Source: Penicillus capitatus | Lineage: Eukaryota; Plantae; Chlorophyta | Assembly (NCBI GenBank): GCA_965649825.1 | Contig: OZ287694.1 | Location: 62,001 to 126,000 of the forward strand | Reading direction: 5' to 3' | DNA length: 64,000 nt | Part shown: positions 23,969-64,000 of the stretch, in pieces | Layout: each line of letters begins with the position of its first letter | Position numbering within the stretch: position 1 is the first letter of the stretch | Program-made: the position numbers and the translations under genes | Notes under the pieces: generated by a model | The model's input: only the letters and a program-made list of their open reading frames with translations | Told to the model about the DNA's origin: nothing | Databases searched by the model: none

Positions 23969-25082
23969 ATGCCACGCAGGAATGGCGTCAATGGAACCGA
24001 AATGATGTTGACGCGGGAGATGTCGCGTGTGGCAACGGTCTGGCAAGGGATCGTTTTCCGAGGAGGCTGGTCGATGCGCATCGCCAAGGCGTACTTTGCG
24101 AAGAAACGTCCGCAGCACAAAATCGATCGCCCGCCGAAAAACCTGCGCTATCCGGTCGGCGAATGGTACGAAGACATGAAAGCACGCACCCTCGACGATG
24201 TTCTGACCGGAAAGAAAAGAGAGATCGCTCGCAAAAGAGTGGCAAGATGACTCCTGTACTTTATCACCTCACTCTAATATCTCACTCTTTTGCTAGATGA
24301 AGTCACTCAATGCGAAGCTGGCCCAGACCGCCAGGCGTCATCGTGAGTACCTGTCGGCGGCATCACGTCCGAAGGAAGAGAAGCCGTTAGAGGAGCGTCT
24401 GTTTCTGCTCTGCCGTGATCAGCTGGGTATCGTACTGACGACGAGCGAGCTGCCTTATATCCACGAGCGGTTGCACTTTCTCCGTCACATCATGAGTCTG
24501 ACGCCGAACGAGCTGGATTTCGTCGTCCATCGCGTGCCTCAGGTATTGAGCCTCCGTCTGCACAGGCAATTGGTGCCTCTGGCAAGTTATCTCGACAAAA
24601 AAAGCATCTCGCCGAAGGAATTGGGCCGCATCGCCCTTCGGTGTCCAGATCTGTTGCTAGTCCCCGTACATCACGATCTGGAACTCAAGGTCGAGTATCT
24701 GAAATCGGTCGGCATAGCGGGGAAAACAGTGATCCGTCTGATCCGTCAACGGACGGCGCATTTCACCTGTCACTTGGAGTTTGAGTTTCGACGCAAAGCC
24801 GATTACCTATTGGATGCTGGACTGTCGGTAGAGGCCCTTCTGAGTCTGATGCGTTACTCGGATCAACTGTTCCGTCTTCCGGTGGAGCAGAACATCATTC
24901 CCAAGATTCGGTTCTTCGAGGAGAGGGGCTACAGCGTTGAACGGACCTCGGAAATGATCCAGCGCTATCCTTTCCTTTACTTCGTCAGTCTGGACAGAGT
25001 CATCCGGCCGTTCTTTGAACAGAGATACGGTCGCACTGTTTGTGATGTGACAGCAAAGACGGACGAAGTGTTAAGAGAGTGA
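23969..25082 (+). CDS. mTERF family protein (start and last exons uncertain)
   Basis: Repeats of the type L..KVEYL..VG, ...RCPDLL, IIPKIRFF...G and RYPFLYFVSLDRVIRP. Intron 24239-24297. Confidence 0.8.
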
Positions 25083-25427
25083 GATCGCGTACCGAACAGC
25101 GACGGCTGCATCGATCGCATCGCCTCGCCGTGCTTAAGTATTGCTGAGAGGAGCTACACGGGAGAGCGATGCGATCCATGCAGCCGTTACTCTTCGGTGA
25201 CGTACATGCGTCCCGACAAAAGTGTGAGATCGTCGACGTCCGTCGGGTCACTTCCATTTGTACGACATGCCGTTGCGTTTCGCCAGTCGTATCTGCGTAG
25301 GCGTCGGCACATACTCTCCACGGAGTCCGATTACGAGCGTCGCTCAAAAGTCCATCACGATGCTCTTCGCCGACAGGATCAGAGAGCGGCGCTGTGTGAT
25401 AGACGTCGTGCGCGTCACCGAAGGGGC

Positions 25428-26619
25428 ATGCGGTTTGGAAGCTGCAGAGAAGTTGACGTTCCGGGCGCCACTCTGGAACAGAAGCTCGAACGCGCGAAGG
25501 TCAGGAGAAGACGATGCCGAGCATCTATCCCCTCAGCCAAGCTTCCATTCAGGGCTACCCTTACGCCAGGCCAGACACCTCCTTTGTCTTTGCTGACGGC
25601 AAAGCGCACTCGCTGAGCGACGACCTGTTGTGGAAAGGAACACCCGATCTCGCCAAAATCCTTTCCGTCGTGGCACCAAGCGTAAAGTGCGTGCGCTTTC
25701 GCGAGTTTGATGGTTTCGACGCCCTTGTGATGAAGCAGGTGCGATCCGGGCGCGTACACCGATGCAGAATGGCACGCCGTGTTGGCCATCGGCAGCAATG
25801 CCAGTCCGGAGCAACTCGCGCGAAAGTACCGAGACAGTGGCGGCGTCATCATTCCTGTCTGTCACATCAGCCTTCTGCAAAGAGTGATGATGTGACGTAG
25901 GTCGTGCAATGTGTGATGCGCGATTTCGATGTGGTCTATGCACCGTTGGTCTCGTCCTATGGCTCGTGCACAGCCACCCTGGCCTATGCGCCTGGCACCG
26001 TCGTCGAGGTCTTTGTGACCTATCTCACCTCTCCGCTGCTCGATCAGATGATCGAAACCGAAGGCGCCTACGATCTCGTCAAGCTCCGCAACATCGATCT
26101 CAAAACGGGCCTCTCGTTGGCGCAATTCCAGTCCGTACCCTTCTCCCAACACATGCACGCGATGCTCAACACGATGCGCATGATAGAGAGGGCAAGGAAG
26201 CGGTGGAGCAGCTCGATACCGTCCTACAGTTCAATCACCAGAAAGGAGTGCTGCACACCCCTTTCCGCCCATCGACCAACGGTGCTATCCATCCATCTCC
26301 ACAAAGATCCCTCCCTGTATCCAATTGTGTGTTCGGCATGGCAGGGAACGCCTCGCCCATTGCTCTGAGTGCTATTCCGGCGCAGCGTCGGTCGTTTCCT
26401 GTGTTGACACAAGTGGAGATGCTCACACGTATTATGCACGAGACGCGGCGATCCACAGCCGCCGTCGATTTGGACGACTGGATACGACGGAACCTTGAAG
26501 AGGAAGACAGAAGACAGTCCCTTGTCCAAGAGCTCATATCCTCCAGTTGTCCCTTCGACTATCCACACACCGAAGTGACGGTACGCATCGGTCATGTGTA
26601 TTCGAAAAACGTCCAGTAG
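25428..26619 (+). CDS. Conserved hypothetical protein with a gamma-glutamylcyclotransferase-like (GSN) motif
   Basis: Spliced KLERAK|GYPYARP, VLAIGSNASPEQLARK, DFDVVYAPLVSSYGSCTATL, TEGAYDL and PIALSAIPAQRRSFP. Start uncertain. Confidence 0.6.
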
Positions 26620-62025: not shown

Positions 62026-62098
62026 TGTCGCTGGTGCACGGTGGACAGAAACATTAGCTGTCGTTTGAGATGCACATCAGCCACATTAGGTCTCTTCG

Positions 62099-64000
62099 AT
62101 GCACACAATGAACATCATTTCTGAAACGGAGAGCACGAACGAACGCACGTTTGGCGAGGCCTTTCGTCGCAGCGAATGTTCTGTCGAGCCGCCGCCATTC
62201 GCGTCAATTCGAAGTGTCCAAGAACGTCACATCACTTCTCCTGCTTCGCCTGACCCACCCTATGGTTCAGGTGTCCTGCGAACAACCCGTCTGGCCACGC
62301 GCGGCCTCATCGCTTCCGCACCAGCATCCTTCCGAACCTCCACAATGACGACCGCTCTGCCGCACCCGGCCGCCCCGACAGCCGCCGAAAACGAAGCCGA
62401 ACGCGTTGGCAGTATTCGCGACGCGCTGACGGATCTCTTCCAAGAGGCATTTGACAGAGCCTTCCCAGGTGAAGTGCTGTCACATCATCTCATACTTTAT
62501 GACACGGCGGCTGACGTCTTCATTGCCGAAAGGGGAATCCGACGTGCCGACCATCAGTCCATGCGAAGCTCGATTCGGCGACTATCAATGCGTCAATGCT
62601 ATGGGGATCTTCAAGAGACTCAAAGGCAAAGTCCGGAACCGTCCTCGGAGGGAGGCAACGGCCGAAGTGACGTGTGGCCTGCAGGAAGGTGCACCGAAGC
62701 AGCCCAGGGCGGTGGCTGCCATGATCCAAGAGGCTCTGGAGAACAGAGACATCATCCGAGAAACGAGGTACCCACAGCTTCTCCGTTTCTGATGTGACAG
62801 ATCGTGTGTCCAGCATTGCCGGCGCGGGCTACGTCAACGTGGTGCTCTCCCCCGAGTGGCTAGCCAACAGAATCCGTATCTCACTCTTTTGCTGGGAAAA
62901 TGAGTGAGGACTGGATGTGTCTGCTCACAGGCTCCATGCTGATCCAAGGGATCGAGTCTTGGGCACCGCGTCCGTTGAAGCAACGCGTGGTGATCGACTT
63001 CTCCTCACCAAACGTGGCAAAAGAGATGCACGTGGGGCACTTGCGTTCCACCATCATCGGCGACACCCTCGCCAAGACGATCGAATTCACGTATCTCCTG
63101 CCCTTCTCTCTTGCGGCAGGATGGATGCTGGTTTCAGAGGCGCCTCCGTTTTGCGGCTGAATCATATCGGCGACTGGGGAACGCAGTTTGGCATGCTCAT
63201 TCAGCACATGAACGATCGGAAGGAGGAGGGTCGTGCACTTGAGGGCGAAGGAGAGGAGGAAGATATCAGCGATCTCCAACAACTCTATCGGTCGGTCACA
63301 CTTTTCCGTTTGTGTGAGAAATGTATGGATGGGGATCAGGGCAGCGAAGGAGCGCTTTGATGCGGACGACGATTTCAAGACGCGTGCACGAATCGCCGTA
63401 ACGAAGCTGCAGAACGGCGAAGAGGCGTATCTGGCGGCGTGGCGGCGTATCTGCGAGGCGTCGCGCAAAGAATTCGACGCGATCTATCGTCGTTTAGACG
63501 TCGAACTAATCGAACGCGGCGAGAGCTTCTACAATCCTTATCTGACGCCTTTAGTCGAAGAGCTCAAATCACAAGGCATCGTCATCGAAAGCGAAGGCGC
63601 TAATGTACGTCCGTCACATCACTTATAGACGTCGGTCGTCAAGGCCAGACGGCGGTTTGTTGTTCCAGTGCATTTTCGTGGAGGGGCAACGCATTCCGCT
63701 GATCATTCAGAAATCGGATGGCGGATTCGGATACGGCGCCACAGATGTGGCAGCCATCCGTCATCGCCTGATGGAAGAGAAGGCCGATTGGATCATCTAC
63801 GTTACGGATATCGGTCAGCATCGAGTGGCCTGTCTTATGGCCGACGGTTTGTGGCGTCTAGGTCAGAGTCAGCATTTCGAACTGATCTTCGGCAGCGCCA
63901 AGAAGATCGGATGGATCTCGGATGACCCGGAGAGCGCTCGTGCGAGTCACGTCGGGTTTGGATTGGTCATGGGCGAGGACGGACAGAAATTTCGTTCTCG
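62099..64000 (+). CDS. argS: Arginyl-tRNA synthetase (partial, runs off the right edge)
   Basis: [62 protein letters not shown] and [12 protein letters not shown]. Confidence 0.95.

Follow-up and report, generated by a model that had tools for sequence, protein, structure and literature searches.

Recurrent short words in the miniature introns of Penicillus capitatus: candidate lineage-specific signals for intron definition

We describe a small vocabulary of recurrent DNA words in a 64-kb stretch of the green alga Penicillus capitatus (contig OZ287694.1, positions 62,001 to 126,000; 64,000 nucleotides, hereafter the window), where the words are about 40-fold concentrated in introns relative to exons. 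The introns are very short, the words are asymmetrically placed within them with respect to both strand and position, and a sister species carries the same words, apparently preserved by selection. We tentatively read the words as lineage-specific cis signals that would act at the RNA level in intron definition, and would put the probability of this sequence-based reading at about 0.45.

Recurrent words are concentrated in introns

Three words were defined: M1, (A)TCTCACTCTTTT(GC); M2, (C)TGTCACATCA or CACGTCACATCA; and M3, TCACACTTT(T). The commonest 8-mer and 9-mer across the full window are GTCACATC, with 47 matches against 3.30 ± 1.79 expected from dinucleotide shuffles, and TCACTCTTT, with 26 against 0.59; the 12-mer extensions TCTCACTCTTTT, GCTGTCACATCA, and CACGTCACATCA occur 11, 6, and 6 times. 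Within 46 curated introns (see below), three 8-mers together number 41 copies where about 1 would be expected from per-intron dinucleotide shuffles (GTCACATC 14 vs 0.45, TCACTCTT 17 vs 0.27, and TCACACTT 10 vs 0.33), and none of 1000 such shuffles matched the observed counts. The density of these 8-mers is 17/kb in introns (41 in 2.4 kb), 0.43/kb in the exons of confidently placed genes (12 in about 28 kb, at least one of which, at 63613, actually lies inside an unannotated ArgRS intron), and 1.25/kb in the remaining 33.6 kb (42 copies, many of them evidently inside introns of genes that are not annotated). Of the 46 introns, 30 contain at least one 6-mer core. The recurring words are only 8 to 14 nucleotides (nt) long, apart from a single 19-mer, GTGTGAGAAAGAGTGACGC, common to two introns, and similarity ends there.

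An earlier note on this DNA, made by reading the sequence without database searches, had proposed a motif vocabulary shared by the introns of unrelated genes, and had let the proposal stand or fall on over-representation against a dinucleotide-matched background; that enrichment is evident both in the window and in the introns. The span it gave, 24239-63640, does contain the words but is too narrow, as copies run from 3137 to 63620. The region from about 43.2 to 54.6 kb, which includes a long terminal repeat (LTR) retroelement, is word-free except for one antisense TCACACTT at 48548, and the 8 kb past the right end of the window have fewer copies (6), likewise in intron-like contexts.

Orientation and placement differ between the two ends of the intron

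Sense copies outnumber antisense copies for both TCACTCTT (13:4) and TCACACTT (8:2), or 21:6 together (combined binomial p = 0.006). TCAC-type cores have a median relative position of 0.29, and GTGA-type cores, their complements, one of 0.57 (Mann-Whitney p = 5e-4; Fisher p = 0.007); TCAC and CACT are enriched 5.1- and 5.9-fold in the 5′ halves of introns, and TGTG, GTGA, and TGAC 6.0-, 5.2-, and 3.7-fold in the 3′ halves. Sense GTCACATC begins at +5 to +11 in 4 of 5 cases, and antisense GATGTGAC ends 2-27 nt before the end of the intron. The words had previously been placed near the 5′ end and, as TGATGTGAC(N0-7)AG, at the 3′ end. They are indeed close to the donor, although GTCACATCA is usually not the donor itself and starts at +5 to +11; TGATGTGAC sits 2-27 nt from the end, but abuts the acceptor AG in only two curated introns. 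The asymmetry of strand and position favors an RNA-level role over a purely strand-blind DNA signal.

The intron set and its splice sites

GT/GC-AG introns were chosen by homolog similarity alone with a protein-to-genome spliced aligner, which replaced ab initio finding based on codon statistics and bare GT-AG borders, where genes were missed or many spurious introns appeared. A second gene finder was trained on verified introns and saw no more than positions -2 to +6 of the donor and -4 to +1 of the acceptor; it was therefore unable to learn the words. Spliced alignment yielded 10 introns in Brr2, where the Caulerpa protein was the reference, 17-19 introns in ABCC on which four homologs agreed, and NadC and ArgRS introns by comparison with the sequences of solved structures; four DnaJ introns lie at positions reproduced in both relatives described below. 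The 46 curated introns comprise the spliced-alignment set and a few from the second gene finder.

Curated introns are 43-79 nt long, and the 36 homology-verified training introns average 53 ± 7 nt. Acceptors are CAG in 24 cases and TAG in 21 (YAG in 45 of 46), and donors follow only a weak consensus, AG/GT[GAC][TCA][GC]T, in agreement with the degenerate donors and tiny introns reported in the earlier note, with the correction that 7 of the 46 donors are GC rather than GT (39). GC-AG introns usually make up roughly 1% of eukaryotic introns; here they account for about 15% of the set (examples are 30446-30497, 30122-30168, 37938-37992, 37769-37828, 36235-36291, and 33218-33273), and DnaJ introns 1 and 3 have a GC donor in the window and a GT donor in the sister species. 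Thirteen of the 46 introns are a multiple of three in length, and several of these are also stop-free (20576-20635, 63814-63861, 37257-37313) and therefore invisible to gene callers based on open reading frames (ORFs); a 1402-residue Brr2 ORF protein in a public database includes the unspliced 60-nt intron at 20576-20635. Gene finders that assume canonical green-algal splice sites would thus mis-annotate this genome, given 15% GC donors and many stop-free introns of 3n length. The set does not look U12-type, a class expected to combine RTATCCTT at the donor with TCCTTAAC as branch site 10-20 nt before the 3′ end: three introns start GTATCTC, and a TCCTTAAC-like element occurs in none. No genes for the U1, U2, or U6 small nuclear RNAs (snRNAs) turned up when the window and the sequences L001, L002, and L004 were scanned with Rfam.

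The words are conserved in a sister species and arose inside older introns

Two relatives were compared with the window: a sister species (L001; ENA ERZ26696514), collinear with positions 30581-5269 at 77-87% nucleotide identity, and a more distant syntenic relative (L002; Logan SRR33785045) with 86% amino-acid identity in Brr2 and a GC content of 42.5%. The sister species carries the same words (15 GTCACATC vs 1.6 expected). Identity between it and the window is 89% at verified coding positions and 76% at intron positions, yet of 23 words located outside verified coding sequence 16 are preserved whole, compared with 18.7% of flanking control 8-mers (binomial p = 1.4e-7), and the spacers between conserved words contain indels. 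The words thus appear, from this comparison, to be maintained by purifying selection in the sister species. Turnover is also seen, with GTCACATCA present only in the sister species in the Brr2 intron at residue 237 and in DnaJ intron 2, and with reverse cases too.

None of the words is found in the more distant relative, whose own top 8-mer reaches just 2.5-fold enrichment, mostly within coding sequence; on these figures, a private vocabulary of its own was rejected. Nevertheless, all four DnaJ introns, word-filled in the window and the sister species, are found there at the same codons (87, 129, 163, and 257; phase 0) as motif-less introns of 40-41 nt, and 8 of 10 Brr2 introns agree in position and phase. 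Altogether 12 of the 14 introns compared, the check on related algae that the earlier note had proposed, share position and phase with motif-less introns of 40-46 nt in the distant relative, and the words therefore arose inside pre-existing introns. The Brr2 introns at residues 162 (21261-21308) and 1951 (15536-15593), one of which carries words, occur in the window and sister species and not in the distant relative; conversely, the intron at Brr2 residue 26 in the latter (L002 8872-8916) was not found in the window. At the locus of an ABCC paralog in Ostreobium quekettii SAG6.99, the introns are canonical and 340-840 nt long, and the words do not occur.

A metagenome scan for GTCACATCA-N(5-35)-TGATGTGACAG gave 105 loci, unrelated long palindromes of varied GC content lacking the other words, and no further relatives. 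Near-perfect palindromes of about 100 nt (...CCCCCCAGCT-GTCACATCA-...-TGATGTGAC-AGCTGGGGGG...) recur in certain metagenomes (loci L011, L024, L026, L027, L029, L038, L040, L055, L058, L061, L074, L077, L091, and L106, on JGI Ga0126337 and ENA OMLO01 contigs); the family looks like a miniature inverted-repeat transposable element (MITE) or REP-like repeat of another organism.

A possible role in intron definition

Under the RNA-level reading, words in the pre-mRNA would help the spliceosome to define introns as short as about 53 nt despite degenerate donors. UCAC-class words (UCUCACUCUUUU, UCACACUUU, GUCACAUCA), mostly within about 20 nt of the donor, may serve as intronic enhancers bound by a sequence-specific factor, for which U-rich/TIA-1/RBP45-type or KH-type proteins would be candidates; the complementary GUGA-class words of the 3′ half (UGAUGUGAC, GUGUGAG, GAGUGAC), with their yUGAy core, and the 3′-proximal CUCAC+UCUUUU(GC)AG copies may provide the branch site, with or without a pyrimidine tract; and pairing between 5′ and 3′ words in some introns would be a by-product of the complementarity of the two classes rather than a selected function. 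Several observations can be set beside this scheme. UCAC, the tetranucleotide enriched 5.1-fold in 5′ intron halves, fits YCAY. About 25 of the 46 introns have NTGAY or CTAAY 11-35 nt from the 3′ end, many of these supplied by GUGA-class words; several TCTCACTCTTTTGCAG ends place an A 12-14 nt from the 3′ end, and ends like ATCTCACTCTTTTGCAG read as a yUnAy adenosine followed by a pyrimidine tract. In the ArgRS intron at 62768-62813, the acceptor is not the AG of GACAG but the following one, 13 nt further downstream; this would fit a branch site at GUGAC, since exclusion of AG near the branch site is established behavior. The earlier note had offered RNA hairpins or protein-binding sites as one alternative; the part of it that invokes sequence-specific intron definition fits best with the sense bias, the placement, and the conservation in the sister species, whereas hairpins are not general.

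Other observations weigh against this reading: i) 16 of the 46 introns lack a core word altogether, so that the words are not obligatory; ii) GTCACATCA is found in both orientations, flanking CT included (16 of 47 hits); iii) GTCACATCA also lies in untranslated regions (UTRs), in intergenic DNA, and twice in one coding exon, which a pure splicing-signal model does not predict; iv) presence of a 5′ motif is not correlated with weakness of the donor (4.8 vs 4.9, p = 0.26), and the idea that the motif compensates for weak donors was dropped for want of a signal; v) the exact reverse complementarity of the two classes is left without account; and vi) all 46 introns were placed by homology or reading frame, in a sample of one 64-kb window and about 24 kb of the sister species.

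A more radical version, which we regard as rather unlikely, would make the words a private intron-marking code, in which one reader recognizes the same 9-12-nt words in either orientation (a UCAC-class word just after the degenerate donor, its exact complement just before the acceptor). Such a code would take over part of U1/U2AF-type recognition and, now and then, seed a new intron. Its reader might be an RNA acting in trans or a variant snRNA able to pair with both classes, or else a factor marking introns co-transcriptionally on DNA; the seeding of introns is suggested by the Brr2 intron at residue 162, which shares its 19-mer with an ABCC intron.

Alternative explanations

If the words, above all GTCACATCA/TGATGTGAC, were instead sites for a factor that binds double-stranded DNA (a transcription factor, or a chromatin or linker mark) and were tolerated only in noncoding DNA, here mostly introns, the near-equal orientations (TCAC 32, GTGA 33 in an interim set of 42 introns), the use of the extended word CTGTCACATCA as a unit in either orientation, the copies in 5′ and 3′ UTRs, intergenic DNA, and an exon, and the AC that precedes 11 of 47 copies, several reading TGATGTGACGT(G) with a TGACG(T) bZIP-like core, would all be accommodated. 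We nonetheless think this unlikely: orientation is coupled to transcript position, TCACTCTT and TCACACTT are both sense-biased (21:6) and rare outside intron-like contexts, and some two or more copies per gene inside 45-55-nt introns along gene bodies would be unusual for transcription-factor sites. A DNA-level signal, also raised in the earlier note, is possible for GTCACATCA, with its two orientations and its UTR, intergenic, and exon copies, but as a general explanation is contradicted by the asymmetry of strand and position. That same asymmetry is not expected of a strand-blind mutational process (templated insertion, local duplication or inversion, or biased gene conversion between introns) that would make and homogenize functionless words in noncoding DNA, an explanation which we find improbable even though it would accommodate the tandem same-orientation copies (33669-33712, 22092-22147, 34412-34461), the identical 19-mer in two unrelated introns, the two coding-exon copies, and turnover such as the gain of GTCACATCA in the sister species; 70% intact 8-mers, against 19% in neighboring sequence at about 20% divergence, require selection or a continuing homogenizing force. 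There is also little to recommend the simplest proposal, that the words are this organism's branch-point consensus and polypyrimidine tract, made exotic in appearance by the tiny introns. In the 3′-proximal TCTCACTCTTTTGCAG and CATCACTCTTTTCTGCAG, a yUnAy adenosine does fall 12-14 nt before the 3′ end, and GUGAC, GUGAU, and CUGAU fit CURAY-like branch sites at 11-35 nt. But a U2-type signal, taken as a yUnAy adenosine about 10-40 nt upstream of the AG with a pyrimidine-rich stretch behind it, fits the 3′-proximal TCTCACTCTTTT(GC)AG and GUGAC/GUGAU copies and not the donor-proximal copies or the purine-rich antisense copies that take the place of a pyrimidine tract in 37594-37646 and 33496-33538; 7 of 13 sense TCACTCTT begin between +6 and +20, which leaves 35-62 nt from their A to the 3′ end (introns of 44-79 nt), so that the distance is not fixed; sense GTCACATC lies near the donor, as noted above; copies occur outside introns; and introns just as small occupy these positions in the distant relative, which has none of the words. 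An ordinary branch point and tract at a fixed distance, on which the earlier note had agreed to abandon its proposal, does not account for all of the words, as about half of the TCACTCTT copies lie in the 5′ third of the intron; only part of the words would be ordinary branch site and pyrimidine tract.

The last two explanations fare worse. Inverted word pairs might form hairpins that unite the splice sites, with pairing as the selected function, after the manner of euglenid nonconventional introns, Amoebophrya introners, or the long introns of Giardia and Trichomonas, and some folds are striking: 30446-30497 (a 9-bp terminal stem of GTCACATCA/TGATGTGAC, fold z -4.1), 54803-54855 (z -3.3), and 36839-36890 and 63091-63137 (z -2.1), with matched pairs also in the NadC, ArgRS, and DnaJ-2 introns. 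Yet the mean fold z over the interim 42 introns is -0.40 (t-test p = 0.08, Wilcoxon p = 0.10) with z < -2 in only 5 of them, no structure is predicted for word-rich introns such as 33669-33712 and 22092-22147, in the curated set the longest run of complementarity between 5′ and 3′ halves averages 4.24 within the same intron and 4.43 between different introns (permutation p = 0.87), and borders are canonical GT/GC-AG. A general hairpin mechanism is therefore largely refuted and, as the selected function, pairing is very unlikely; pairing potential follows from the shared vocabulary and is not co-selected within single introns. We give just as little credence to descent of the introns, or of the word pairs, from an introner or MITE with GTCACATCA/TGATGTGAC terminal inverted repeats. 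Introner-like elements are known in Micromonas, Aureococcus, dinoflagellates, and Amoebophrya (PMC9860276, PMC7789003), the window has two clean inverted-repeat units (25861-25897 and 30448-30494), and the Brr2 intron at residue 162, missing from the distant relative, shares a 19-mer with an unrelated ABCC intron. Inverted-repeat-like pairs are found, however, in only 2-3 introns; similarity never extends past 12-19 nt and defines no family along the length of the intron; no target-site duplications were seen in the flanks of the two clean cases; 12 of 14 introns, all four motif-rich DnaJ introns included, are at positions shared with the distant relative and word-less there; and no transposase is nearby, the only transposable element in the window being the LTR retroelement, which is word-free but for the antisense TCACACTT already mentioned. 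The introner-like mobile family that the earlier note had listed is thus not borne out, as shared sequence amounts to short words at ancient positions without target-site duplications, although intron sequence may have been copied in a minority of cases (the 19-mer of the Brr2 residue 162 intron and ABCC 33496-33538).

Individual introns and other copies

The window contains ordinary green-algal nuclear genes (Brr2, whose closest named relative is that of Caulerpa lentillifera at 80% identity, a PUF protein, mTERF, a DnaJ-ferredoxin protein, NadC, an ABCC transporter, a kinase, a galactosyltransferase, a beta-helix protein, and ArgRS) and one Ty3/gypsy LTR retroelement. Several of the particular instances given in the earlier note proved sound. 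The NadC intron at 31535-31581 is real, contains TCACTC...GAGTGA, and ends TGATGTGACAG, the spliced protein aligning unbroken to solved QPRTases; the ArgRS intron placed at about 62876 is 62876-62930 and carries CTCACTCTTTT...AAAATGAGTGAG; word-bearing ABCC introns were confirmed by spliced alignment to four homologs; the motif reported in an ABCC exon next to a donor corresponds to copies at 37268 and 37289 that encode the homolog-aligned residues RSHHL and TSHHD; and the UTR or intergenic copies include those at 32037 and 32106, in the interval that separates the convergent stop codons of NadC and ABCC. Copies of the words in UTRs and intergenic DNA lie at 28502, 32037, 32106, 38148, 38440, and 10839-12177.

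Table 1. Introns and other word-bearing features of the window (L001, sister species; L002, more distant relative)
Feature	Positions	Strand	Words	Evidence and remarks
NadC intron, 47 nt	31535..31581	+	GTGCG-TCACTCTTT-GCTTT-GAGTGA-...-GTGATGTGATGTGAC-AG	Unbroken alignment to solved QPRTases across junction; spliced alignment
NadC intron, 49 nt	31215..31263	+	Sense GTCACATCA at +8	Spliced alignment to T. thermophilus QPRT, continuity GNVSGSGIGTILLAER; alternative donor possible at 31222
NadC intron, 79 nt	31819..31897	+	TCTCACTCTTTTT at +14, GTGTGAC downstream	Join DILKGNVTLE continuous; gene finder alternative 31819-31870 (52 nt)
DnaJ intron 1, 52 nt, GC donor	30446..30497	-	GCAC-GTCACATCA-...-TCACACTTTTTT-...-TGATGTGAC-AG	J-domain spacing (LGVAPNADPGKIKKAY); clearest terminal inverted repeat; same codon and phase in L001 and L002; words kept in L001, with indels in spacers
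DnaJ intron 2, 49 nt	30271..30319	-	GTCACCTCC...TCTCACACTTT...GTGTGAG...CAG	Position common to L001 and L002
DnaJ intron 3, 47 nt, GC donor	30122..30168	-	GTCACATC at +9	L001 counterpart has GT donor and no motif
DnaJ intron 4, 46 nt	29794..29839	-	GTAAGC...GGTCACACTTTT...ATCTCACTCTTTTGCAG	3′ end like branch site plus pyrimidine tract; conserved in L001
ABCC intron	37427..37473	-	GTGTGACG-TCTCACTCTTTT-AAAAGTGTGAC-...CAG	Spliced alignment to 4 homologs
ABCC intron	36839..36890	-	GTGTG-GTCACACTTTTT-GATGTGAC-...-GTGTGAG...CAG	Spliced alignment
ABCC intron	34412..34461	-	Two tandem TGATGTGACG, second then CAG	Spliced alignment
ABCC intron, 44 nt	33669..33712	-	Two tandem sense TCACTCTTTT (+6; 14 nt from end)	Minimum free energy 0; spliced alignment
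ABCC intron	33496..33538	-	GTGTGAGAAAGAGTGACGC, 19-mer identical to one in Brr2 intron 21261-21308	Spliced alignment
ABCC intron, all three words	32893..32939	-	GTATTTC-TCACACTT-GTA-TCACTCTTTT-G-TGATGTGAC-GTGGTGTAG	Spliced alignment
ABCC intron	37594..37646	-	Two antisense-type copies (AAAAGAGTGAGAAAGAGTGA) before TATAG	No pyrimidine tract; spliced alignment
ABCC intron	37206..37256	-	Starts GTCACACTT, second TCACACTT inside	3 of 4 homologs
ABCC coding exon	37268..37296	-	Two GTCACATCAT copies beside donor	Encoded residues aligned to Caulerpa and other homologs
Brr2 intron, residue 162	21261..21308	-	GTGTGAGAAAGAGTGACGC	In window and L001, not L002
Brr2 intron, residue 201	21090..21144	-	Contains CTGATGTGACAG	Position common to L002 (motif-less there); acceptor 21112 or 21090
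ArgRS intron	62469..62532	+	Sense CTGTCACATCA at +11	Spliced alignment to human ArgRS
ArgRS intron	62768..62813	+	CTGATGTGACAG 13 nt upstream of acceptor used	Branch-site-like distance; reading-frame argument and gene finder
ArgRS intron	62876..62930	+	GTA-TCTCACTCTTTT-GCTGGG-AAAATGAGTGAG-...CTCACAG	Fold z -1.9
ArgRS intron	63291..63339	+	GTCG-GTCACACTTTT-CCGTTT-GTGTGAG-...CAG	9-residue excess vs human ArgRS; spliced alignment
Predicted intron, GC donor, ending directly before mTERF ATG	24242..24296	+	...CCTCACTCTAATATCTCACTCTTTTGCTAG	Gene finder; word conserved in L001
Probable 40-nt intron of + strand gene	25861..25900	+	GTCACATCA-GCCTTCTGC-AAAGAGTGA-TGATGTGAC-GTAG	Flanks highly conserved in L001; ORFs on that strand
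Predicted intron	22092..22147	-	Two tandem TCTCACTCTTTT	Gene finder; one copy conserved in L001
Predicted galactosyltransferase-gene intron	54803..54855	-	...GGATCTCACTCTTTTTTGTGTGATCCAG	Gene finder
Predicted kinase-gene intron	40602..40657	-	GTGTGACG...ATCTCACACTTTGTGATGTGACAG	First gene finder (ab initio)
Gap of about 130 nt between convergent NadC/ABCC stop codons (3′ UTR or intergenic)	32037..32114	+	Two GTCACATCA	
Cluster about 700 nt upstream of ABCC start codon	38801..38847	none	Three TCACTCTT (one inverted pair)	

Several further observations concern the window at large. Convergent stop codons lie so close together, 12 nt apart between a + strand ORF (26619) and the PUF gene (26631) and about 130 nt apart between NadC (32034) and ABCC (about 32167), that the 3′ UTRs must overlap. 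A predicted lysine/glutamate-rich protein directly upstream of Brr2 (- strand gene 21865-23409) has four copies of a 27-nt coding tandem repeat (EEAKEDGVY) at 22798-22905. The retroelement (46795-53111, - strand; Ty3/gypsy-type) has gag-protease, reverse transcriptase, and integrase ORFs, and its upstream ORF contains five copies of a 27-nt and eight of a 9-nt tandem repeat (arrays at 51020-51140 and 52065-52140). The interval 10872-13443, of lower GC content (47-48%) and with GTCACATC at 11441, 11882, and 12177, does not align to the sister species even though the two are syntenic again on either side, and probably represents intergenic or promoter DNA that evolves fast.

Comparison with known systems

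We found no description of these words in the Bryopsidales, Caulerpa, and introner literature that we searched. Intronic splicing enhancers downstream of weak donors include the U-rich sites of TIA-1, Nam8, and plant RBP45-UBP1 and the YCAY clusters bound by Nova, a metazoan protein. The algal words are like these in that UCACUCUUUU and UCACACUUUU lie 5-20 nt downstream of weak donors and UCAC fits YCAY, but they are longer and more specific (9-12 nt), and show no correlation with donor strength in this sample.

A second comparison is with the fused branch-point/3′ splice-site motifs of Giardia, Spironucleus, and Trichomonas (VCTRACACRCAG, RCTAACAARHTAG; PMC6679479), which CUGAUGUGACAG resembles, as does CTGATGTGACAG, a CTRAY-like branch sequence with its A 8-9 nt from the 3′ G and joined to AG. 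Both systems have a lineage-specific extended word and very short introns, and some of the longer diplomonad and parabasalid introns also pair internally. In the alga, however, only a minority of introns end in this way, with GATGTGAC at a variable 2-27 nt from the end, the donor is not extended and conserved but degenerate, introns are abundant in the genome, and near the donor the reverse complement of the word is enriched too. Introners and MITE introns likewise have short sequences common to the introns of unrelated genes, a few terminal inverted repeats, and lineage specificity, and the introner elements of Amoebophrya carry 8-20-nt inverted repeats and 3-5-nt direct repeats (PMC9860276, PMC7789003); the algal introns differ in having no intron-wide similarity, no direct repeats or target-site duplications, canonical borders, and ancient positions shared with a word-less relative. 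As in the nonconventional and intermediate introns of euglenids (PMC3935182, PMC4770533), end pairing in some introns could juxtapose exons, but the borders here are conventional and end pairing is not statistically general.

Lineage-specific extended intron motifs are known mainly from intron-poor parasites, and intron sequences shared within an alga have so far been introners. Here, by contrast, in a compact and intron-rich genome, ancient introns of 45-55 nt seem to have gained a small, selected vocabulary of 9-12-nt words in situ, in one lineage. If the words are splicing signals, the three species would constitute a natural experiment on how intron definition is rewired as donors degenerate and base composition shifts (from 42% to 53% GC).

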